From positions 62,001 to 126,000 of the forward strand of contig NW_003314381.1 of NCBI RefSeq assembly GCF_000143415.4: 64,000 nucleotides of DNA, read 5' to 3'. This document shows, piece after piece, positions 44,287 through 60,120 of this stretch; within the stretch, counting starts at the first letter, position 1, and each line of letters starts with the position of its first letter. The stretch is from Selaginella moellendorffii. Its lineage: Eukaryota; Plantae; Lycopodiophyta. The notes beneath the pieces were generated by a model, which saw only the letters and a program-made list of their open reading frames with translations, searched no databases and was not told the origin of the DNA. Made by a program: the position numbers and the translations under genes.

Positions 44287-44404
44287 CAAGCCTCTTGTTT
44301 GAGTAGTTTACTGTGTGTTCTTTCTCACAGCACGAAACCTCAGAGCTATAGAAACGTTAGCTTTCAATGAAAACAATTCAAAGTTGATACTAGAGAAATG
44401 GACA

Positions 44405-46414
44405 ATGGCACATACTTTTTGCTCTCCTTTCGAGATCGTGGCACTACTAAAGTCCTGCAAGGATCTCGCCCAAGGCAGGCAAATCCACGCGCAGATTTCG
44501 GCTAGCAAACACCACAGCAAGAACATTGCCCTCTCCAACCTCCTCGTCAAGATGTATGGTAGATGTGGCAGCCTCGACGATGCATGGCGGGTTTTCGACG
44601 GCCTGGATCAGCCCAACGTTTACTCCTGGAATATCATGATTCGAGCATATACCGAAAATGGGGATATGCTGCGAGCTCGCGCCCTCTTCGACAAGATGGC
44701 TCAAAAGAATGTGGTCTCCTGGACAACGATCATAGAATCTTACGGACGAAGCGGGAATATACTTGAAGCCAAGAATCTTTTTGAGTTGATGCCTGACCGC
44801 GATGTAGTTTCTTGCAATGTGATGATCGAGGCATTTGCCCAGAACGGGCATCTCCAGGCAGCAAGGAGGCTGTTTAACGAGATGGACGACAGGGATGTTG
44901 CCACGTGGACGACCATGATCACGGCCTACTCCCAACGCGGGGATCTGGTCGTCGCCCGCGAGTTCTTTGACGGGATGCCGTACAGGAGCATTGTTTCGTG
45001 GAGCGCCATGGTCACCGGGTACGGACAGAATGGCCAGCTCCAGCAGTCGCGCTGGGTGTTTGAATCCATGCCCGAGAGGAACCTTTTGACGTGGACAGTC
45101 ATGGTTGCGGTGTATGCCCAGTGTGGGCATTTGGAGGAGGCCAAAGAGTTGTTTGATGCGATGCCGGAGAGGGATGTGGTGGCCTGGAATGCGATGATTA
45201 CCGGGTTTTCGAAGAACTTTAAATTGATGGAAGCGCGCAAGATGTTTGATTCTATGCCTCGGAGGGACTTGGTGTCGTGGGCATTAATAATCTCTGCATA
45301 TGCTCAGAACGGGAATATACTACAAGCAGAGGCTTTGTTTAACTTAATGCCTTTCCAGAACTTAATAGCAAAAAACACGATTATGGATGCGTATGCATCT
45401 CATGGTCAGATTGATAAAGCTAGATTCTTATTTGATCAGAGTCTAGAACGGAATCTAGTGTCGTGGACAACAATGATCACTGCATATGCCAGAAACGGGC
45501 ATCTGGAAATGGCAAAGGATCTGTTTGATCAGATGCCAGAGCGCGACACTGTTTCTTGGAACACTTTGATCAACGCTTACGCGCAGCAGGGCTTCGTTGA
45601 TGAGGCATTAGATATTCTCAGCCAGATGCCATGGAAAGATGTAGTGTCGTGGAACATTATCATCGCTGCAAATGCCCAGAACGGAGAAAACGAACAAGCA
45701 ATCGCCCTCTTTCGGCAAATGGACCTTGAGGGCATTCCTGCCAACGAGATCACATTTATCACGGTCCTGGACGCCTGCACAACGATATCTGATCTAAAGA
45801 TCGGGCGGGCAGTCCATGCCGAGGCAGTGACGAGTGGATTGGGAGGTGTGGAGGCAGTGACCACGGCTGCAATTACAATGTGTGGGAAATCCGGGAGCTT
45901 GCCAGAGGCTACGAGGCTATTTCAATCTATGCCGGTCAAGAGCACAGTAGCATGGGGCGCGATGATCACAATCTACGCACAGGGTGGACAAAGTGAAATC
46001 GCCCTTGATCTCTTTCGGGACATGGAGCTTGACGGGATCCAAGCGGATGGCATCACTTTCATAGCTGTGCTGTCAGCTTGCTGCCATTGTGGGAGATTTC
46101 GGGAGGGATGGGAGTTTTTTGTGAGCTTGAGGCTGGACTATTGGGTGGAACCCATGGCTGAGCACTATGAGTGTCTTGTGGATCAGTTGGGAAGAGCGGG
46201 CAAATTGAGAGAGGCGGAAGAACTGATTGAGAGCATGCCATTCTATCCCACTCCAGTTGCTTATACTCAGCTCCTGAGTGCTGTAAAGACGCAGGAGGGT
46301 GATCAAGGTGATCGTGGCAATATAATCAGGTCTAGTGCTGAAAATTTGGCTACTAAAGTACAAGAACTAGATGATCAAAACTCGTCTAGTTATGTGCTTC
46401 TATCCACCTTATAA
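44405..46414 (+). CDS. PLS-class pentatricopeptide repeat protein with truncated E region
   Basis: Many tandem 31-aa repeats, then CHCG..HYECLVDQLGRAG..SYVLLSTL*. No DYW. Confidence 0.95.
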   Translation: MAHTFCSPFEIVALLKSCKDLAQGRQIHAQISASKHHSKNIALSNLLVKMYGRCGSLDDAWRVFDGLDQPNVYSWNIMIRAYTENGDMLRARALFDKMAQKNVVSWTTIIESYGRSGNILEAKNLFELMPDRDVVSCNVMIEAFAQNGHLQAARRLFNEMDDRDVATWTTMITAYSQRGDLVVAREFFDGMPYRSIVSWSAMVTGYGQNGQLQQSRWVFESMPERNLLTWTVMVAVYAQCGHLEEAKELFDAMPERDVVAWNAMITGFSKNFKLMEARKMFDSMPRRDLVSWALIISAYAQNGNILQAEALFNLMPFQNLIAKNTIMDAYASHGQIDKARFLFDQSLERNLVSWTTMITAYARNGHLEMAKDLFDQMPERDTVSWNTLINAYAQQGFVDEALDILSQMPWKDVVSWNIIIAANAQNGENEQAIALFRQMDLEGIPANEITFITVLDACTTISDLKIGRAVHAEAVTSGLGGVEAVTTAAITMCGKSGSLPEATRLFQSMPVKSTVAWGAMITIYAQGGQSEIALDLFRDMELDGIQADGITFIAVLSACCHCGRFREGWEFFVSLRLDYWVEPMAEHYECLVDQLGRAGKLREAEELIESMPFYPTPVAYTQLLSAVKTQEGDQGDRGNIIRSSAENLATKVQELDDQNSSSYVLLSTL

Positions 46415-46461
46415 AAAGACAAAGATTTCACTTCGATGTATGTTTTAGCTTTCAAGCCACA

Positions 46462-47844
46462 TTATCTACCACTGAGTAACAACTGAATGGACTTTCGAAG
46501 TTCCATCCCTTCCTCCAGCTTTCCACCCCTCATAAGCATGTCAAAAATGCAAACATAGTGATCAACCATGCTCTCAATCCCAAAGTCCTGGATCATGGAG
46601 ATCAGGAAATGTTTGGCTTGGCAGAGTGATCCTCCATGACCACAAGAAGCAATAATGCCAATAAATGAGATCTCGTTTGGTGTCACGCCTTCAACAAGCA
46701 TGCTATGGAAGCATTCAACAGCCCTTCCAAAATGCCCAGTTCGGGAAAGTGCTGTCAACATTGCCGTCCAGGAAATGATACTTCGATTTGCCATTCTTGA
46801 GAAAACTATCTCTGCCCATTCAATCGATCCACCATTACCATACATGCTGATGATGGCATTTGCAATCTCAATCTCCTCCGGGTGTGCGACTCTCCAGTGG
46901 ATCTCCCTGCCCTGGAGAAGATCTGGGATGCTAGAACATGCCTCAATCACTGTAAGAAATGTGATCTTGTTTGGTGGCACATTCATCCTATAAAACAAAT
47001 CAATTGCCTTCCTTGGCTGGTTATTGCGTGTGTAAGCACAGATCATTGCATTCCATGATGCTGCATTTTTATCTGGCATGCTCTCAAATAAAATAATTGC
47101 TTCTTCCAATTGCCCTGCCTGTCCATATGCGGCTACCATGGCGTTCCACACAATTGTGTCGTATGAAGGCATTTGTACAAACAGACAATGGGCTTCTTCC
47201 AGGTGCCCTGCATGGGCATTTGCTACAACCATAGTTGTCCACGTCACTACATCCTTTTCAAGCATGGACTGAAAAACTTGTTTAGCTTTAGTTAAATTAC
47301 CGTCTTGGCAGTATGCTGACAATATCGTGTTACACGAGAAAATATCCCATTCAAGCATTCTATTTAGTAGAGTTTCTGCCCTATGCAGATTATTTGTTTT
47401 TGCAAAGGCTGCTAGCATTGCATTTGATGCCATGAGATTTTTTTCTGGCATTTTTTCAAAAAAGAGATTTGCCTTATCAACACAAGAACATGTGGCATAT
47501 CCAACGACAATTGCAACCCATGATTCAATGTCTCGTTCAGGGATGCGATGAAACAAAATTTCTGCTTCTTGTAAATGCCCTGATTTGGCATATGCAGCGA
47601 TCATGTTGTTCCAGGTAAGAATGTTTCTGTAGGGCATCTGGTTGAAGACGTCCAGCGCCCGTTCAATGAGACCACACTTTCCGTAAAGTTTGATGATGAG
47701 AGTGTTGAGGTAGACATTGGCATGGTGCTCACTTCTTGAAATTTCTGAATGGAGACAAATCCCCGTTCCTAGATTCTTTGTGTTATAACATGCTTTAAGA
47801 AGAGTGCCCAGTCTTCCCACATCAGTTAGGGTTGATTGAAGCAT
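46462..47844 (-). CDS. PLS-class pentatricopeptide repeat protein lacking E/DYW
   Basis: Tandem 31-aa repeats, ending shortly after HYVCIFDMLMRGG. Confidence 0.9.
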   Translation of the reverse strand: MLQSTLTDVGRLGTLLKACYNTKNLGTGICLHSEISRSEHHANVYLNTLIIKLYGKCGLIERALDVFNQMPYRNILTWNNMIAAYAKSGHLQEAEILFHRIPERDIESWVAIVVGYATCSCVDKANLFFEKMPEKNLMASNAMLAAFAKTNNLHRAETLLNRMLEWDIFSCNTILSAYCQDGNLTKAKQVFQSMLEKDVVTWTTMVVANAHAGHLEEAHCLFVQMPSYDTIVWNAMVAAYGQAGQLEEAIILFESMPDKNAASWNAMICAYTRNNQPRKAIDLFYRMNVPPNKITFLTVIEACSSIPDLLQGREIHWRVAHPEEIEIANAIISMYGNGGSIEWAEIVFSRMANRSIISWTAMLTALSRTGHFGRAVECFHSMLVEGVTPNEISFIGIIASCGHGGSLCQAKHFLISMIQDFGIESMVDHYVCIFDMLMRGGKLEEGMELRKSIQLLLSGR

Positions 47845-48189
47845 GCTAGAGCAAATCAATCAATCTATACATTTATTTCAAAGAATATTTAAAATGTATA
47901 GCAGAGAATATTATTAACAAATCCTATTACAAATCAAATTTTTGCACTGCAACATTTTAGTTTTTTTTATAGGTGTTTAATTTAGTATCTTGTCAAATAT
48001 TAAAATTAACTTGTTTATTTAAAATTAGAAAATATTAAGAGTATTAATACAAATATGCTACACTTGCAATGACAAATATAAGGTGGCAAATTTGCTTGTA
48101 AGTAAAATTTAGGAATGTCTAATTTACCTCATTCTTGAGATTACTTTTATAATTTCATCAATTAGTGCATTCTAAACCAAAAAAAAACT

Positions 48190-48213
48190 CAGAGAGAGAG
48201 AGAGAGAGAGAGA
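48190..48213. repeat. (GA)n microsatellite
   Basis: Direct reading. Confidence 0.9.
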
Positions 48214-48225
48214 TCAAATAACATT

Positions 48226-48375
48226 GGCAGGCTTGCAACGGTAGAGATCTAAGAAGTCAAGGATGGTGAAGATGGCGAGGCTCTATTTCTTTGTCCACTG
48301 ACACAGTGAATATTTGTGAATGTGATGTGGAGTGCGACTTGGGGGATGCACAGTGATTACTTGCTGAGTTAAAGA
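48226..48375 (+). pseudogene. Deleted remnant of the 3' end of the kelch-like gene (inverted duplicate of ~58076-58365)
   Basis: GTAGAGAT..GTCAAGGATGGTGAAG, ATATTTGTGAATGTGATG and GACTTGGGGGATGC match the reverse complement of 58076-58365. Confidence 0.85.
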
Positions 48376-48528
48376 GCTAGATCATTCTTTTTTCCGTTTG
48401 TTCATTCGAAGCATGTTTGTCATTGTCTGTTAACACGTTTTCACAATCAACAATCTCCGGAACTTGGAGCTTGTAAGTTCCATCCTTGTCTAAAACCGAA
48501 ATGTAATTGGAGATAGAAAATATTGATG

Positions 48529-49847
<1,319 letters not shown>

Positions 49848-49899
49848 CGCTCTCTGGAAGGACAAGTTAAAGAACAACACCAGAAAGTACACTTATCAC

Positions 49900-52233
49900 T
49901 TACCAAAAGGTAACTTGCTGAGAGAGTATCAGATCCGATAACGTTTTACCATGCCTGTCAACCCTCCTTGAACAAGTCACCCCTCCATCCAGTACATTCC
50001 TGACAACAACGTTGAGAGAATGTATCCCTTCGACCAGATAAACAGAAACTTCAGCTTCTCCGGCCTGACCAACGAAGGCCGTCGCGAATACATTTTTCAC
50101 CCATCTGGCCGTTACGACCTCTTGCAGTCGAGCTATGTCGTCGGTGCAATGCGGAATCAAGCTGAAGTTCAGTGTATTCCCCTTGTCACCAGTTCTGCCG
50201 TGAGCAATGTGATATAGAGGAATGCCAACACCTCTTGGAGCTGGAGCTGTCTTTGCAGATGGACTTGGCGTCGGTAAAACATCCATGCAAACCACGGAGT
50301 TTGATTGACAACACTCGAGCCTCCTCTGTGTGCCTGAAAACGCAGTTTTCCAGGACACGGCATCGCGGGAGACTAATTGCTTTTTCAGTGTTATTTCTCT
50401 CTTGATTCCTGAACTGCAAACGTATGTCTCGTCAGTAAAAACAAAAGACAATTATGAACGACCATACCGTATGCCACCTCCTCCAGCAGGTCCATTCGTG
50501 TAGAGCGCTCCAAACTCTCGGACAAGTGCAGCAGCCTCCTCTTCTGTACCAAATAATCCATCGACACGCAGCCGAGCTTCGTGACAGACTACTGGCGGAC
50601 TGGGACTTGCGAACAGACTATCTTTACCAATGACGCACGAAAGAATTCTTTGCTGAATTCCAGGGAACGATTCCTCCAACCACGACCGAACCTGCAAAAT
50701 ACTAGTTGCTAAGGTGAGACGACAATCTTAAGCGACAAACCAGTTTATCGGATAGATTGGCACGCTCGTCGCAATATAAGCCACCGTACGAGATTTCTCC
50801 CCAACCTTTCCAGCCACAAAACTAGACAAACAACAAGTCAGGACAGTACCTTTGTGCTGCTAAACTTACAGATGGGATCAGGCGAAGTAGCAAGCTGGGA
50901 GAACAATGAGCCTCAGCGCCGCTTACAATTACTCTGTCTTTTGAGAGCTCCCTGAAATTGACCTTGCGGAGATCTAGAATCTGTTTCGCAAGGAACATAA
51001 GAAGCGTTAAATGAAAGGTGCAGTCTGTACCACATCAGGGGTGATATACGAAGAAGGATCCTCCACTTCATATATAAGCTGCTCAGAGCATGTTCTCTCA
51101 CTTATTTCTCCCCCAGAGCCTTCGGCTTTGGCGACGACTACTTTTCCGTCCCAGGAAATGTCAGCGTATGGCAGCGAAACGTCAAGAAGTTCTGGAAACG
51201 GAAGACTTCGAAGCTTGTCACCTGCAATTTTTTTTATTTGAGTTAACAGTTTCGGAAGAGCTGGGACAGAAAGCACAACCTGGATGCACGTAGTACCCTC
51301 CTGTCAGCTGGCATCCGCATTCCAGGAGATGAGCAGCGACCGCACCTTGAGCAAGCTCTTTGTAGCTGTTCCAGTTCCAGCCAAGCTCGAAAATCTAGAA
51401 AGCATTCCTTGGAGATGTCTTTGCAAGAACTAGCTTCTTACCATCGGTCCCAGGAAAAGCGCAACATCGGCCACACGACTGGTGATGATAACATGAGGTC
51501 GACATTGCTGTAATACTTGCACGATTGGAGCTGCTCCAAGGTAAGTGCTAGAACCCTGTCGTCAACTCGTTAGATCGGATAAACATCGAGCCATATCAAT
51601 CACTTACATCAGAAGGAAGCGGATACTCGTAGGCCACAGCCACAGAGATATGAATCCCAAGTTTTGAAGAGAGCTTGAGAACCTCGTCTTGTGCTCCCAA
51701 AGGATCCACTGAAAAGACAAAGTTCCTTAAACATCTCTTTTAAAAAGCGGGAGAGACCTCCGCCCATGTTTGTGACGATGCAAACTCCTTTCTCCACTGC
51801 TACTGGAAGAAGAGAAGTCATCCATTCCGAGACTAGAATTTTTTTCTGGAAACCATCAGCCTTGCTAGAAGATGGAAGAACCAAGACAAGAAACATAAAA
51901 AGACAAGCTCTTACTTCGAGGATCATAGCCTTGGCCACCGGCGGCTTTAGCTTCCACACGCTCCACAAAGGTCCGCTCGGCGAGACACTCTAGAACCAAG
52001 TACTGCAAGCTTGGCACCCGATGGAGGAGCTTCAATGCCGCGCGGGGCCTGTCGCCAGCAAAGCCGGCGCCACATCCAATCCTCACAACATCTTTCTGCC
52101 GCAAAGGATTCTCCCTCTGAAAGAAAGAGGATCGAACACACGATTCGAGCTACTTGCTACTCACCAGCGTCACTGTGCTCTCGGACGATGGATCGGCGTG
52201 GAGCTCAAACACGCGATCGTTGCCAGTGGCCAT
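49900..52233 (-). CDS. Acyclic terpene utilisation AtuA-family (DUF1446) protein, multi-exon
   Basis: IGCGAGFAGDR, LECLAERT, GYDP, HLLECGCQLTGG, EQLIYEV, AHGRTGDKGN, DRHGKTLS. Exons join through GT-AG introns. Confidence 0.92.
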
Positions 52234-52589
52234 AGGACCTCCCTCCCGCCCTAAGATATAAATCTAATTAATGTGGAAGTTTCCAAATACAAGTTTGCTT
52301 TAACAGCATATTTTCTAAGCAAAAGGCCATTGTTTTCCATATTTTATTCGAATATATAGAATGGCCATGAAGTATATATGATAAAGTTTGTAAATATATC
52401 CAAGAAAAAACTAAGATAACCAATATTCCTCTCATCAAATTATGTAGAACAATTTACAATTTGAATGAGATAACTAGAGTTACTTTTTAGCTATTTAGTT
52501 TACTTTGACAAGCTTAACTATAATAGAACACTTTTTCCCTAAATTTCTAAATATAACTGGTGAATATTCAAGTATCAATAACTATTAAT

Positions 52590-53443: not shown

Positions 53444-56418
53444 CTTCCATCCTCATATAATGGCAACATATTTTTAAAATTATACCACTTGTTAATAGTT
53501 TTAGGTCTAAATGTAATTAGAGGATGAAGACCAAACAAAACATCCACAACTAGTGTAAATAAAGACCATACACATCCATTGTAGTGATATATATCCCCAT
53601 GAAGAACTTCTATATAAAAAATATCATGAAATGAGCATTTTAATTGTTAATATTCATGGTTCATTATGATAGGCATTTTAAATATGTCAATAACACATCT
53701 AATTAAGATCAAGAGACATTTTTTAAAGCTCTACAATCAATCATCTAGTTTATGACACCATTATTATTGGATTCAATTGTTAATTTTGCAAGAATATTTG
53801 GTTGTATCATACCAGTTGCAAGGCAAAAATATCCTCACAATAGCCTATGTGGCAAAGTTATAATGCATGTTAGCACACATGCCCATCTAATGTAAGAAGT
53901 GATATAGGGGAGTTTTGTGAATCAATTTAAAAAAGCAAAAACTACAAGGAACTCAACTATAGCACCAAAATATATTCAAAAGATTATGTTGAAGAATTTT
54001 ATTGTTGGGCTACTAAAAGAATCTATACTAGCTTATGGGAGATATTATGTGGTCTGCAACCTAATACAAGCTTAAAGAGGTATATTTGGTAATTTTAAGA
54101 AATATCTTCCTCATTTTTTGCTTTATATAAGATTGTGCAATTCTAAAAAGGGGAAAAGTGCATCCTTAAACTAAAATAGACCTAATCATTTAATAATACA
54201 TAGTTACATAATGTTGAATATTAAGGTATCTTTGACCTTAATTAGTTTAATTACTATATCCTTATAATTTTATAGTAGTAATTTATTTCCAAACTAAGTT
54301 GTTAATGAAAATGAGGACCCTTTGGTCATAAGATGTCTATGATAAACTTGGATCTTGTCTCATATTAAATATGATTGGCTCAAGTGACTTAGTAAATTCT
54401 TAGATATATTGCATTGGGTATGAATCTTTACATATTTGTCAAATCTAATGCAAACTATAGAGTAGCTTTCACAGAAAAGGAAAATAATTAGGAATAGAGC
54501 CATTTGTTAAAATATTCATAAATGGATGAAAAAAAAAGTGATTCTAACTACCTGAATAATGACATTTGCCATTGAAAAGGCACACTACAAAGCACATGCC
54601 TTGGGCTTCATCCACTTTACATATTGGTTTTCCTTTGGTTGTGAAGATGGTGGGATGGACTTTGGAGCTACAATCTTGACATTATTCTATTCTAAGAACC
54701 CACTTCTTGACTGAGCTAGCTCAAGTGTCAGATGAAGAAAGCACATCCTAATAAGTTAAATCTCTACAATATTTTTCTTAATAAGATATATTTTGCAAAT
54801 ACAAAATTTAGATCTAATCAATTTACCTTTGAGCAATATGGTAGCTCATATACAATCTTTACCATTTTAAAAAACATTTTGTGATAGTCTTTCAAAGTGA
54901 CATTGCAATGTATTATACTATTATAACTCTTGTTGCCATTGCTTCCACTAAATGCCACAAAACGTATAATCTTGAAAGTCACCACATTACAATTTTTTTA
55001 GGTGAGGTAGGTATTTTTCTCTACATGATTTGTTGTGGTCTCAATCATTGCATTTGTCTCTAGAATCATCCCTCTCTTATGTATGGTTTGGCAATGGGAT
55101 TACTAACGTGGCTCCTCACTCTTGAACTACTGTGAGAAAAATTGCAAAAGTTAAAACTACCAACACTTAGGATGTTTTTCCCAGAGTGCAAAAGGTAATT
55201 GATAAAAAGAATCTAGTTTCAAATTTAATATTATGAACCTAACATGGATTGAAAATATTTGGAAAGAAGTCAATGTTTTTTATATATTTAAAGTGTGCCA
55301 TTCTGAAACACTCAGCAAAAACAAGTTCAACTCTTTAACTTGGGAGATGAAGAGTGGTCCACCCTCTGTTTTACTGTTTTTTCCAATACTAGTGTATGGA
55401 ATCAAATTCAAAAACAGTCAGCTACAAGAGGATGGTCATCGATGCCAGGTTTTGCCTTAAATCACAGAGGAAGCCGGCCTTGGAGGTGGTGCCACTGATG
55501 TCCATGTCACCCATGAGCAACCCCAGCACTCTATACATCACAAGGACGCATTCGTGGAGTTGTTCGTCCCAAATCTCACTAACACAGTCCCGTTTCGATC
55601 ATACACGCCCAGCGTCACCGTCTCCTCGAGAACAAGATCGCACTCCCGTCCACTCCCCTTCGTTCTCGCCTGCCACAAGACCTCGTTGCTCGAACTCTCG
55701 CTTAAACACCGCATTGCAATTTTCTCCCATCTCCAGAACGTACTCGGGCCTTCTCACTGGCAGCCGGGGTACTGAAGCTCAATCGCATCCTCTCGTAGCC
55801 TGGGGAGGGATTGTTGTAATGAGGGCTAAGAACCTGGCGTAGAGCTCGTTGCTGGCGGCATCAGTGAGGGTGTGATCGTCGTCTTGGGTGTGCATGAGAA
55901 GCTTAGGAAGTTTGCTCCAAGGATCACAGGAATAGCGTAATCATGACAATAGCTGATCTGATCGATCAGCCCCCCTCCCCCGTTTGCCCCAATTGCTGTA
56001 GCCAGAGGGAGCACCTGGCTCGCAAATTCCTCCGGATTCAAGCTGCTGGTTGCACTTGATCAGCTCCAAGAGTGCTTGCTGCTAGCGAATATAATCGGGG
56101 ACACAAGGGGGATGCAAACGCATTTGAAGTTCAAAAGCTCAATATGCTTCTTTCTGGCACACGAAGTTTCCTCACAGTCTTGTCCGACTCGGAAATAAAG
56201 ATAGCACGAAATGTGTGCCTCGTACTCCTCGCAACTATAGTCAACTATGAGTTGCGTGCCTCAGACTCTTCGCCCGGACGAGAGCGGCCGGAGCATTCCA
56301 TCTGTGCATGGTTTTTTTACGGTCTCGATCAGTGATGCGGTCACTATTTGGCCAACGCGATTCCAACCCATGGCAAGCTAGTCTTAGACGGATCTTGACT
56401 TTTACCAATGGCAAGTGG

Positions 56419-56565
56419 GAGGTTCTTAAATTCTCTTCAAAGCTTGGGATTCATATTTCTGTGGCTGTAGCCTACAAGTATCCACTTCCTTCTGATGCAA
56501 GTGATTGATATGGCTCGATTTTTATCCGATGTACCTACAGCAAGGTCGGCCTTGGAGCACCTCCT
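56419..56565 (+). pseudogene. AtuA pseudogene remnant upstream of OPR copy B
   Basis: Matches the reverse complement of ~51527-51687 (exon-intron-exon), then jumps to the AtuA/OPR spacer sequence. Confidence 0.88.
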
Positions 56566-56599
56566 TGGAGGTGTTGCTCTTTAACTTGTCCTTGCAGCA

Positions 56600-57917
<1,318 letters not shown>

Positions 57918-58075
57918 CATCAATATTTTTTATCTATCTTACTCCATTTCTATGCCTTTTCTTTGTAAGATCGTCAGGATGGAAACTTGTGTTGATAGAT
58001 TGTGAAAACGTGTTAAGAGACAATGAGAAACATGCTTCGATTGAACAAACGAAAGAAAGCATGATTTAGCATCTT

Positions 58076-60052
58076 TCACTCAGCAAATAATCCCCAGATG
58101 TTTTCTTCAATTGGATAGCACGTCCACTGCGCATCCCCCAAGTCGTATTCCATCACCCTGCTCGTCTCCAGCGAGTCTTCGTTCTCCATCACATTCACAA
58201 ATATCTTGCTCACACCGTCAGTGCACAAAGAAATACACCCTTGCCATGCCCGAGCTTTGATCGTGGTCACAAGTTTGCTCGTCCCTTCACCATCCTTGAC
58301 CTCCCAAATCTCTACTGTCTCAGTGTCTTCAATGTCAAGCGATCTTCCCACCACAAACAGCCTCCCGCCACAAGCAACCATGCTTGATCTCACGTTCTTG
58401 TTTCGACCATCGGGCTCAGTGGGCGAGAGAACTCCATCCTTTGGAAAGATATCGTCCCACACATTGTTAACGCTGTCATACGCAATCACCCGCATCTTGT
58501 TGTTGAGCCTCCAGCCCTTGACACCCTCTGGCACTTTCCCCCTGTAGAACTGGATGCTAGACAAGTAAATTTTGTCCCTGCAGCTGGAGCTCGGCCCAGA
58601 GACCGAGCAATGCCAGCCGTAGCTCCGGGCGTCAACTTTGCATGGGCCTATCGGCACGTCCCACGACTTCGTAAGGGAGTTGTATCGGTGTACGTGAACA
58701 TTGGATTCTTCCGAGTTAACTGTCTCCAGGAAGAAGTAATACAGAAAGTACGTGCGGGGCGCTTGCTGCTGCTGCTTCAGAGTTATGCCAATGAATTCAC
58801 AAGGGAAGGGAGAATATTCGTCACTCTCTTTTTGTTTTGTTGCCTTGTTCTGTATATCCTGGGCGAAGGTGGTGATGTTTGGGATTTCCTCCCAGCAGTA
58901 CGTATCTGTGCTGCCAATATAGATCCGTGCAGGGAATTGTACTAAGGCACGATACTTCCGTAACTCCGGCACGCAAATCAGTCCCAGCTCTTTCAACAAC
59001 GCTCCTTCCGCAGGCTTACAATCACAAGAACGAGGAAGCTCGAGAGCGCGTACGCTTGAATTCGAGATCAGCCATAGCAGTGATCCATCTTGACAAGGCA
59101 CAGCCTGTCGTGTTATGTGAATTGCCTTGACAATGTGAGGCTTGCAAGGACGATGCTTATGACCCGAAAACATCCTCTTTCCACCCTTTCTTTCTTCGTT
59201 AGAACCATAGCTCGACCACTCGTTGCTCTCGATGTGGTACTCAATAACACGTCCCGGAGTGCGTGCTATGATCTTGTGGTTTCCATCACTTGCGAAGAGG
59301 ATGGTCGTGTTGCTGGCGTTGTAAAAATACTCGGAGATGCAAATCATTTTGTCCGCCACCAATTTCCAGACCCTCAAGAACCTGTGGCATGAGGTTCTAC
59401 CGATTACGTACAAGCTCCCGCGGCACACAACCAGTGTGGGGTCAATGATTGAGTGATTGGAAAGATTATCCCAGCCGCCTTTGTCGACGAGAACTCCCTG
59501 ATTCACGCCCTCCAGTTCTTCGCTGTCCATGTCATATGTTGCAATATCCATCTTCACACAACTGTCAGTAGCAATGTAAGCCTTGGATCCATCAGCCGCG
59601 AGCATAAAAGAGCAGCTTCGCAAATTCCACTCCTTCTTGCAACTCCACAAACCCGTCTCCGAATCAAACACCACTACCCGGATGAAGGTTGAATCTTTGG
59701 AGATGAACCCAAACAGCTTGTAAGCAAAGAAGTTCCCCACCACCTTGTGTCTCATAGCAAACCCTATGAAGTATTCACTTCGGCTGATCTCGCTCAGCTG
59801 TATGGTTCTCCAGTTTTCCAGCAGTGGATTGCCAACAACAACAAAGGAAGCAGAAAGACTTTTCGAATTATACTCATCCGAGGTCGCCTGATACAAGCAC
59901 AGAAGGCCCAAAGCGTTTTCGATGGCTCCAACCTCCATGCCTGCACAGTTTTCCGGGAGATTGAAAAACTCCTCAGTATGCGTCGATAGATCATAAGCCC
60001 AGAGCTTGTAAGGCCTGTCCCACCGTGGGCTGGACGTCGCAAACAACCACAT
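58076..60052 (-). CDS. Intronless kelch/F-box-associated beta-propeller-like protein with two tandem modules and no evident F-box
   Basis: Internal repeat LVVCRGSLYVIGR / MVACGGRLFVVGR, each followed by VWK/IWE and EY..W motifs. Confidence 0.7.
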   Translation of the reverse strand: MWLFATSSPRWDRPYKLWAYDLSTHTEEFFNLPENCAGMEVGAIENALGLLCLYQATSDEYNSKSLSASFVVVGNPLLENWRTIQLSEISRSEYFIGFAMRHKVVGNFFAYKLFGFISKDSTFIRVVVFDSETGLWSCKKEWNLRSCSFMLAADGSKAYIATDSCVKMDIATYDMDSEELEGVNQGVLVDKGGWDNLSNHSIIDPTLVVCRGSLYVIGRTSCHRFLRVWKLVADKMICISEYFYNASNTTILFASDGNHKIIARTPGRVIEYHIESNEWSSYGSNEERKGGKRMFSGHKHRPCKPHIVKAIHITRQAVPCQDGSLLWLISNSSVRALELPRSCDCKPAEGALLKELGLICVPELRKYRALVQFPARIYIGSTDTYCWEEIPNITTFAQDIQNKATKQKESDEYSPFPCEFIGITLKQQQQAPRTYFLYYFFLETVNSEESNVHVHRYNSLTKSWDVPIGPCKVDARSYGWHCSVSGPSSSCRDKIYLSSIQFYRGKVPEGVKGWRLNNKMRVIAYDSVNNVWDDIFPKDGVLSPTEPDGRNKNVRSSMVACGGRLFVVGRSLDIEDTETVEIWEVKDGEGTSKLVTTIKARAWQGCISLCTDGVSKIFVNVMENEDSLETSRVMEYDLGDAQWTCYPIEENIWGLFAE

Positions 60053-60120
60053 GGTATAAACCAATCAATCAAACTCTAGACCTAGATAGAAGCTTTTGGT
60101 ATAAGCCCTAATCAAGCAAA

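Follow-up and report, generated by a model that had tools for sequence, protein, structure and literature searches.

An AtuA-family gene and an OPR gene of Selaginella moellendorffii joined in spliced RNA by a 50-nt intron at the AtuA stop codon

The stretch of Selaginella moellendorffii DNA analysed here carries on its minus strand an AtuA-family gene that is followed by an OPR gene, here called OPR-A. The intergenic space between the two measures 52 nt, and 50 of these nucleotides belong to an intron that connects the last coding exon of AtuA to the leader of OPR-A. A second OPR copy (OPR-B) is found in inverted orientation, next to a short piece of AtuA sequence. All positions given below are those of the complete stretch of 64,000 nt, which we call the window. 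The features to which the text refers are the following.

49904-52233, minus strand: AtuA-family gene, 11 exons, 597 aa; exon borders from joints in RNA contigs (intron 1 putative), with the Pfam domains AtuA and AtuA_ferredoxin.
52233-52165, 52116-51915, 51832-51758, 51708-51607, 51554-51442 and 51394-51278, minus strand: AtuA coding exons, from contig joints except at intron 1.
51219-51031, 50980-50870, 50821-50738, 50688-50468 and 50413-49904, minus strand: AtuA coding exons, continued, from contig joints.
52117-52164, minus strand: putative AtuA intron 1, 48 nt, from sequence and reading frames; RENxxRxK homology resumes just past the predicted acceptor.
49905-49985, minus strand: 81-nt hairpin predicted by RNA folding in the last 27 AtuA codons, its 3' arm ending 1 nt before the splice donor and stop.
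49900-49902, minus strand: TAA stop of unspliced AtuA, overlapping the donor, from the sequence; in spliced RNA the stop is a UGA composed of 49905-49904 and 49853.
49854-49903, minus strand: bridging GT-AG intron, 50 nt, from the AtuA stop to the OPR leader; joint 49853^49904 in four of four runs, with 52-74 letters on the shorter side.
49845-49847, minus strand: OPR-A start codon in the context GCG AUG G, from the sequence.
48436-49853, minus strand: OPR-A, 5 exons, from contig joints, translation and the Pfam domain Oxidored_FMN.
49853-49780, 49726-49584, 49526-49398, 49334-48899 and 48841 to about 48436, minus strand: OPR-A exons, from contig joints.
56419-56533, plus strand: remnant of AtuA exon 3 and intron 3, 115 nt, from sequence comparison, 36 nt upstream of the OPR-B homology.
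56600-57917, plus strand: OPR-B, inverted paralogue, 97.5% identical to OPR-A, introns included.

Over its whole length (residues ~10-20 to 597), the AtuA protein can be aligned with angiosperm orthologues, which measure about 640 aa, at 52-55% identity, and it has the make-up of the family, with PF07287 and PF23544 in a protein of about 600-650 aa that terminates at the ferredoxin-like domain. The match to the Pfam AtuA_ferredoxin profile covers positions 1-112 of 113 and reaches to 3 residues before the stop, while the Tasmannia orthologue terminates at the equivalent place, two residues later. The C-terminus is therefore a natural one and the gene is not truncated. Searches with a full-length angiosperm AtuA query gave angiosperm matches only, and a query with the exon-10 protein, which reaches only proteins of 94-297 aa, gave no match above 59% identity. 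The AtuA start codon lies in the context CCU AUG G. Intron 1 is predicted because only its removal connects this ATG (52233) with the AtuA frame, but the contigs of all four runs retain it and are contiguous across 51915-52233/52263. Retention leaves an upstream ORF of only 27 codons, and its occurrence in all contigs is a point against the main reading proposed below.

The OPR-A coding sequence (49847-48529) specifies 362 amino acids with the usual OPR N-terminus. As in other members of the OPR/old yellow enzyme family (PF00724), a full Oxidored_FMN domain is combined with the N-terminus of the plant OPR type. The protein is OPR1-like, its best solved relatives being the OPR1 enzymes of tomato and Arabidopsis (1icp, 1vji), and a C-terminal SRL or SKL is absent.

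At the junction of the two genes, the open AtuA frame reads ACC TTT TGG TAA, with the TAA at 49902-49900 of the minus strand. The letters TTTTG|GTAAGT constitute a consensus splice donor (GT at 49903-49902) that shares letters with this stop codon. The corresponding acceptor (AG at 49855-49854) is preceded by a pyrimidine-rich tract before the CAG that ends at 49854, and from the end of the intron it is 6 nt to the OPR-A ATG at 49847. The spliced RNA thus reads ACC UUU UGA GAGCG AUG GAG, i.e., a stop codon, 5 nt, and then an AUG in a different frame. A sequence-only reading of this DNA had described the same arrangement, and its positions for the AtuA stop, the donor, the acceptor, the 50-nt intron and the OPR ATG all hold on the sequence. 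The bridging intron is, as that reading had stated, of similar size to other introns here (50 nt versus 47-82 nt for the introns of the unit), and the expected TGA stop 5 nt ahead of an OPR ATG in another frame is confirmed in the spliced sequence. The size of the gap also agrees with the earlier remark that there is no room for a terminator plus a promoter. The bridging intron is rich in U and G.

Expression of the locus was traced in sequencing runs. The search listed 24 runs, 20 of which contained at least part of the stretch, and in the best runs about 55-60% of its words were present, a share that fits exons alone. Logan contigs of four runs, each from a different study, were aligned to positions 48100-52500. 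The contigs skip 14 short GT-AG introns of 47-82 nt, located in both genes, and therefore derive from spliced RNA. The proposed junction of 49904 to 49853 was present in these RNA-derived contigs in all four runs, as a joint that skips 50 nt with CT..AC on the plus strand, which is GT..AG on the minus strand. Record 10 of run X4 (1,864 nt) runs unbroken through AtuA exons 8-10, the joint and OPR exons 1-5, with A-type variants throughout, and record 6 of run X10 (1,923 nt) covers all of AtuA and continues for 52 nt into OPR exon 1. Neither an unspliced continuation at 49903 nor any other branch at the AtuA end was assembled in the four runs, and no separate AtuA 3' end or monocistronic AtuA form is visible in their contigs. 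The locus thus behaves as in intergenic-splicing read-through, with one RNA that holds two adjacent same-strand genes in four of four runs. The sequence-only reading had proposed either a bicistronic AtuA-OPR mRNA or an OPR promoter embedded in AtuA. Borne out is the RNA itself, in which splicing connects the last AtuA exon to OPR exon 1, with contigs that run through both genes; these are compatible with double translation of a joint RNA as well as with a nested start site for OPR.

Contigs reveal no transcript starts, ends, strand or single molecules, and rare variants are dropped from them. Likewise, a nested OPR start has so far not been seen in the contigs, which cannot show 5' ends. The contigs that come from AtuA break 30 nt past position 49831, where OPR-A and OPR-B carry different bases, and this break is a branch of the de Bruijn graph with the paralogue rather than an RNA end. 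Adapter-tailed contig ends at 51034 and 51066 in run X1 were considered as RNA ends and are read as a coverage gap instead. Record 8 (run X3) and record 5 (run X10) show all the B-type variants of OPR exons 2-4, and some contigs may switch between the OPR paralogues (A/B chimerism). Contig depth was not used as evidence for co-transcription, since OPR-A and OPR-B share most 31-mers and both contribute to the depths. These complications do not affect the joint, because AtuA exon 10 occurs, within the window, at locus A only, and because the OPR side shows the leader specific to A (AGAGCG, as against CA in OPR-B) together with the base typical of A at position 49831.

The paralogue gives information on the history of the arrangement. 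The homology between OPR-A and OPR-B begins 28 nt upstream of the acceptor that they share; the earlier claim that copy B keeps the same acceptor just before its ATG is correct, with both the polypyrimidine tract and the acceptor preserved at 2 nt from the ATG. In the AtuA remnant close to OPR-B, the donor GT is changed to GC. The remnant and the shared acceptor indicate that OPR-B descends from an A-like AtuA-intron-OPR arrangement from which most of AtuA was lost and in which a spliceable acceptor was kept. The B-specific variants in contigs of X3 and X10 show that OPR-B is expressed, and it is so without AtuA exon 10. The acceptor can therefore serve another 5' exon.

Comparison of the two copies also bears on the function of OPR-A. 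The coding sequences differ at 16 synonymous and 9 non-synonymous positions (dS 0.065, dN 0.011), which gives an omega (dN/dS) of 0.17. The two proteins can be told apart by K6E, S72P, V156L, F204V, G217A, I269V, K283R and S307T, and by the C-terminus (ETV in OPR-A, ESTG in OPR-B). If one copy had been neutral since the split, about 27 non-synonymous changes would be predicted as against the 9 observed, and this is rejected with p ~7e-5. Such purifying selection suggests that OPR-A is very probably translated into a working enzyme, although gene conversion between the OPR copies could soften the argument.

Linkage of AtuA and OPR was sought in other genomes. Among the best 120 full-length plant homologues, none has an OPR domain fused to AtuA and only the two AtuA domains are present; the ESM Atlas holds plain AtuA clusters only. 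In Brassica, a LIM gene lies downstream of AtuA and the AtuA mRNA contig is monocistronic; at the Nelumbo AtuA locus no neighbour was within reach. Of 80 bacterial AtuA loci, two have an OYE gene within 10 kb, which is near chance, and one of these cases (L017, in Variovorax) is adjacent. The Brassica neighbour and the bacterial loci lead us to reject both an ancient linkage and carry-over of a bacterial operon; the AtuA-OPR linkage is therefore lineage-specific and not an inherited operon.

The arrangement can be compared to several known systems. Land plants are reported by Lorenzo-Orts et al. (2019; cited in PMC9768141 and PMC11892635) to possess a bicistronic CDC26-TTM3 transcript, in which a short, uORF-like upstream frame is said to be bypassed by leaky scanning and which is said to be conserved plant-wide. 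The AtuA-OPR-A RNA is similar in being a land-plant nuclear RNA with two protein frames, and differs in that the linkage was not found in Brassica.

Closer counterparts are the read-through RNAs of Arabidopsis, known from 271 loci, 158 of which involve intergenic splicing (Kurihara et al. 2022, PMC9768141). In view of these numbers, the earlier statement that nuclear bicistronic mRNAs are rare in land plants was overstated. These RNAs are minor beside the normal mRNAs and are subject to nonsense-mediated decay, and translation of their second frames is rare (PMC9768141). Here as in Arabidopsis, an intron across the gap links two protein genes of the same strand, and the long tail past the first stop holds the second frame. 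Unlike in the Arabidopsis cases, the intron takes up 50 of the 52 nt of the gap, the stop codon shares letters with the donor, only 5 nt separate stop from start after splicing, and the contigs display no monocistronic form of the first gene. The unusual aspect of AtuA-OPR-A is this geometry, rather than the bicistronic RNA as such.

Green algae harbor polycistronic loci with nuclear, capped transcripts and two conserved frames, for which spacers of 6-14 nt are given as examples (Gallaher et al. 2021, PMC7896298). These polycistrons use leaky scanning, and their first frames are short, depleted in AUGs and preceded by weak start contexts (PMC11892635). The AtuA-OPR-A spacer is similarly very short, but the first frame has 597 codons and the spliced RNA contains 27 AUGs from the AtuA AUG (inclusive) up to the OPR-A AUG, which excludes leaky scanning to OPR-A.

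We propose, with a probability of roughly 0.55, that AtuA and OPR-A are a single transcription unit, an example of intergenic-splicing read-through, and that OPR-A is probably translated from a nested, shorter transcript. In this reading, RNA polymerase II proceeds from the AtuA promoter across both genes. The contigs show that the 50-nt intron is spliced like the other introns of the unit, and the product is an RNA of about 3 kb with the 597-codon AtuA frame and the UGA 5 nt before the OPR-A AUG. As far as contigs can tell, this two-frame RNA is the AtuA mRNA, with AtuA as the first and normally translated frame. The OPR-A protein, the production of which is suggested by the purifying selection, would most likely come from a nested OPR transcript with its start site in the 3' part of AtuA, for which the bridging intron would serve as a 5'-UTR intron, with a smaller chance that ribosomes finishing AtuA restart at the OPR AUG. 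A nested transcript is favoured as the source of the protein because the second frame is seldom translated in the read-through RNAs of Arabidopsis (PMC9768141). Against it stand the short AUG-free leader open to such a transcript, only about 53 nt, and the fact that the two-frame RNA is what was assembled in all four runs, although its tail of about 1.2 kb and the four introns downstream of the AtuA stop would be expected to trigger nonsense-mediated decay. As for the origin, an OPR copy with a 5'-UTR intron probably came to lie behind AtuA and recruited the GTAAGT at the AtuA stop as a donor; OPR-B probably lost AtuA later by deletion while the acceptor was kept.

A true dicistronic mRNA with coupled translation is possible, but considerably less probable. 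Ribosomes would terminate at the AtuA UGA and, aided by the hairpin, restart 5 nt downstream, both enzymes would come from one RNA, and translation of the second frame would protect the RNA from nonsense-mediated decay. The 5-nt distance between stop and start and the good context of the OPR AUG (GCG AUG G) suit such a mechanism, as do the purifying selection on OPR-A and the fact that the two-frame form is the sole assembled form despite its decay-triggering features. The RNA structure near the AtuA stop also points in this direction. When the whole 2,981-nt spliced RNA was scanned in 193 windows of 90 nt, the window that ends at the OPR AUG ranked first (about -33 kcal/mol, z -4.46), with the next one at z -2.29, and a 120-nt fold with the hairpin had z -3.56 at an MFE of -40.8 kcal/mol. 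The most pronounced structural outlier in the RNA falls within the 40-90 nt before the stop, the zone in which viral reinitiation signals are found (PMC3542737). Upon synonymous recoding with the peptide fixed (n = 3,000), only 1.2-1.4% of the sequences fold as well (p ~0.013). The homologous 90 nt of the monocistronic Brassica and Nelumbo AtuA have no excess structure (z +1.3 and +0.2) while encoding almost the same peptide.

Several observations weigh against coupled translation. Eukaryotic ribosomes reinitiate only exceptionally after a long frame (PMC3542737; PMC11892635), and translation of the second frame is, as mentioned, rare for the read-through RNAs of Arabidopsis (PMC9768141). With a mean folding energy of -22.5 kcal/mol for the recoded sequences, against -33.2 kcal/mol for the natural one, a tendency to fold is already imposed by the encoded peptide. 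In run X10, one pair of the stem is disrupted by an uncompensated variant at 49962, and no Rfam family matches within 48300-52400. One hairpin arm covers the unused alternative donor CAA|GTTACC, and since this donor lies under the arm, the hairpin could equally tune donor use. The hairpin is therefore a moderately significant lead, not proof.

Known cases of termination-reinitiation are viral, namely the TURBS of caliciviruses and influenza B virus and the stop/restart of victoriviruses (PMC3542737). AtuA-OPR-A resembles these in its long first frame, in the stop and start codons only a few nucleotides apart, and in the structured element within the 40-90 nt ahead of the stop; the AtuA hairpin places structured RNA immediately before the stop codon, as in TURBS-type elements. 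The pair differs from viral TURBS in being cellular and from a plant, in having stop and start 5 nt apart instead of overlapping, and in lacking UGGGA (TURBS motif 1), as no TGGGA is present on the minus strand from 49904 to 51148, that is over 1.2 kb upstream of the stop. The more specific proposal that OPR-A is produced from the AtuA-OPR RNA by termination-reinitiation after 597 codons, with a lineage-specific 81-nt hairpin as promoting element and with the RNA shielded from nonsense-mediated decay, is put forward as a tentative one of low probability.

It is rather doubtful that the joined RNA is a mere by-product of read-through. AtuA would then be polyadenylated in or just after the unspliced intron, OPR would have its own start, and the joined form would be over-represented only because assemblers merged overlapping transcripts. 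Plant far-upstream polyadenylation elements are U/G-rich, and the composition of the bridging intron resembles such an element. Contigs do merge overlapping transcripts and show no ends, and in Arabidopsis read-through RNAs coexist with monocistronic mRNAs (PMC9768141). On the other hand, the 31-mers that cover the junction require a spliced RNA with both AtuA and OPR sequence, contigs of the four runs pass straight through without an unspliced branch at 49903, and a poly(A) site and a promoter would have to share 52 nt.

An AtuA-OPR fusion protein is very improbable. The sequence-only reading had pointed out that the weaker donor CAA|GTTACC (exon end 49915) would be in frame with OPR, but the joint 49853^49915 occurs in none of the four runs, the joint that does occur leads to a stop codon and a shift of frame, and the alternative donor lies within the hairpin arm. 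Read-through of the UGA, the other way to such a protein, is rejected as it meets a stop after 21 codons in a frame that is not that of OPR. Among the best 150 representatives of the AtuA C-terminal domain none continues into OPR, and full-length matches end at the domain. Equally improbable is that the link is an artefact, either an assembly chimera or a mis-assembled genome: long identical stretches are common to OPR-A and OPR-B and some contigs mix A and B variants, but the same joint was found in four studies, with sequence specific to locus A on the AtuA side (exon 10, within the window) as well as on the OPR exon 1 side (leader and base 49831).

Nuclear genes of land plants are regarded as monocistronic. 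To the earlier description of the locus, the present analysis adds the comparison with the paralogue, the test for selection, the exclusion of mechanisms and the hairpin. Whereas the read-through RNAs of Arabidopsis are mostly decay-prone side products, here two complete enzyme genes under selection are joined by an intron that looks constitutive, with no room for a terminator or a promoter and with stop and start 5 nt apart behind an unusually stable hairpin. AtuA-OPR-A is thereby a compact test case for how the 3' end of a gene is formed when none is present, for where a downstream gene obtains its promoter in a very compact plant genome, and for whether plant ribosomes can restart after a long frame. 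If OPR-A is indeed translated by termination-reinitiation, land plants would possess a cellular equivalent of the viral stop/restart mechanism.

The start of the AtuA gene, which lies on the minus strand, is affected by a short inferred intron whose splicing was examined in RNA-derived contigs assembled from four sequencing runs (X1, X3, X4 and X10).

52117-52164, minus strand: inferred first intron of AtuA, 48 nt

This segment is kept unspliced in contigs from all four runs. When it is retained, the ATG at 52233 opens a frame of only 27 codons and AtuA is left without an in-frame start. Three of the runs also carry one additional T after 52123, in the pyrimidine tract of the inferred intron. 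Directly upstream of the ATG, at 52233-52263, the X1 and X3 contigs part from the window, and within their 30-91 differing letters an additional in-frame ATG (ATGCACCAGCAGCAG) is present; the X10 contigs agree with the window over the same interval. No other copy of the divergent sequence was found within the window, and it probably represents the other haplotype. Further into the gene, X1 contigs terminate in Illumina adapter sequence at 51034 and 51066, flanking a 31-nt gap in AtuA exon 6, and one of these contigs has intron 6 unspliced; we attribute this pattern to low coverage in X1.

AtuA and the adjoining OPR-A gene make up one arm of an inverted duplication, the other arm of which holds OPR-B and a remnant of AtuA exon 3. 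The arms are separated by an AT-rich spacer of ~4 kb (31-37% GC).

44315-47859: two intronless PPR genes directly downstream of OPR-A, open frames of 699 aa and 465 aa
48300-52300: left arm, AtuA and OPR-A
56400-58160: right arm, remnant of AtuA exon 3 and OPR-B
58076-60064, minus strand: Kelch/beta-propeller gene, convergent, next after OPR-B

Further long PPR-like open frames are scattered over the window. Counting both strands, the whole window has 176 copies of TGGGA, where shuffles predict 132 ± 12; none of 100 shuffles reached the observed count.

In other proteins the AtuA ferredoxin-like domain is fused to a nitroreductase domain (P0149) or to a biotin/lipoate ligase domain (P0079); in P0092 it stands together with copia-type retrotransposon domains, a combination that probably reflects a chimeric gene model. 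Of the 80 bacterial AtuA loci, only the one in Variovorax sp. 770b2 (L017:10001-12998) has an adjacent AtuA-OYE pair, in which AtuA is followed 137 nt later by a same-strand OYE gene with 42% identity to the plant OPR.
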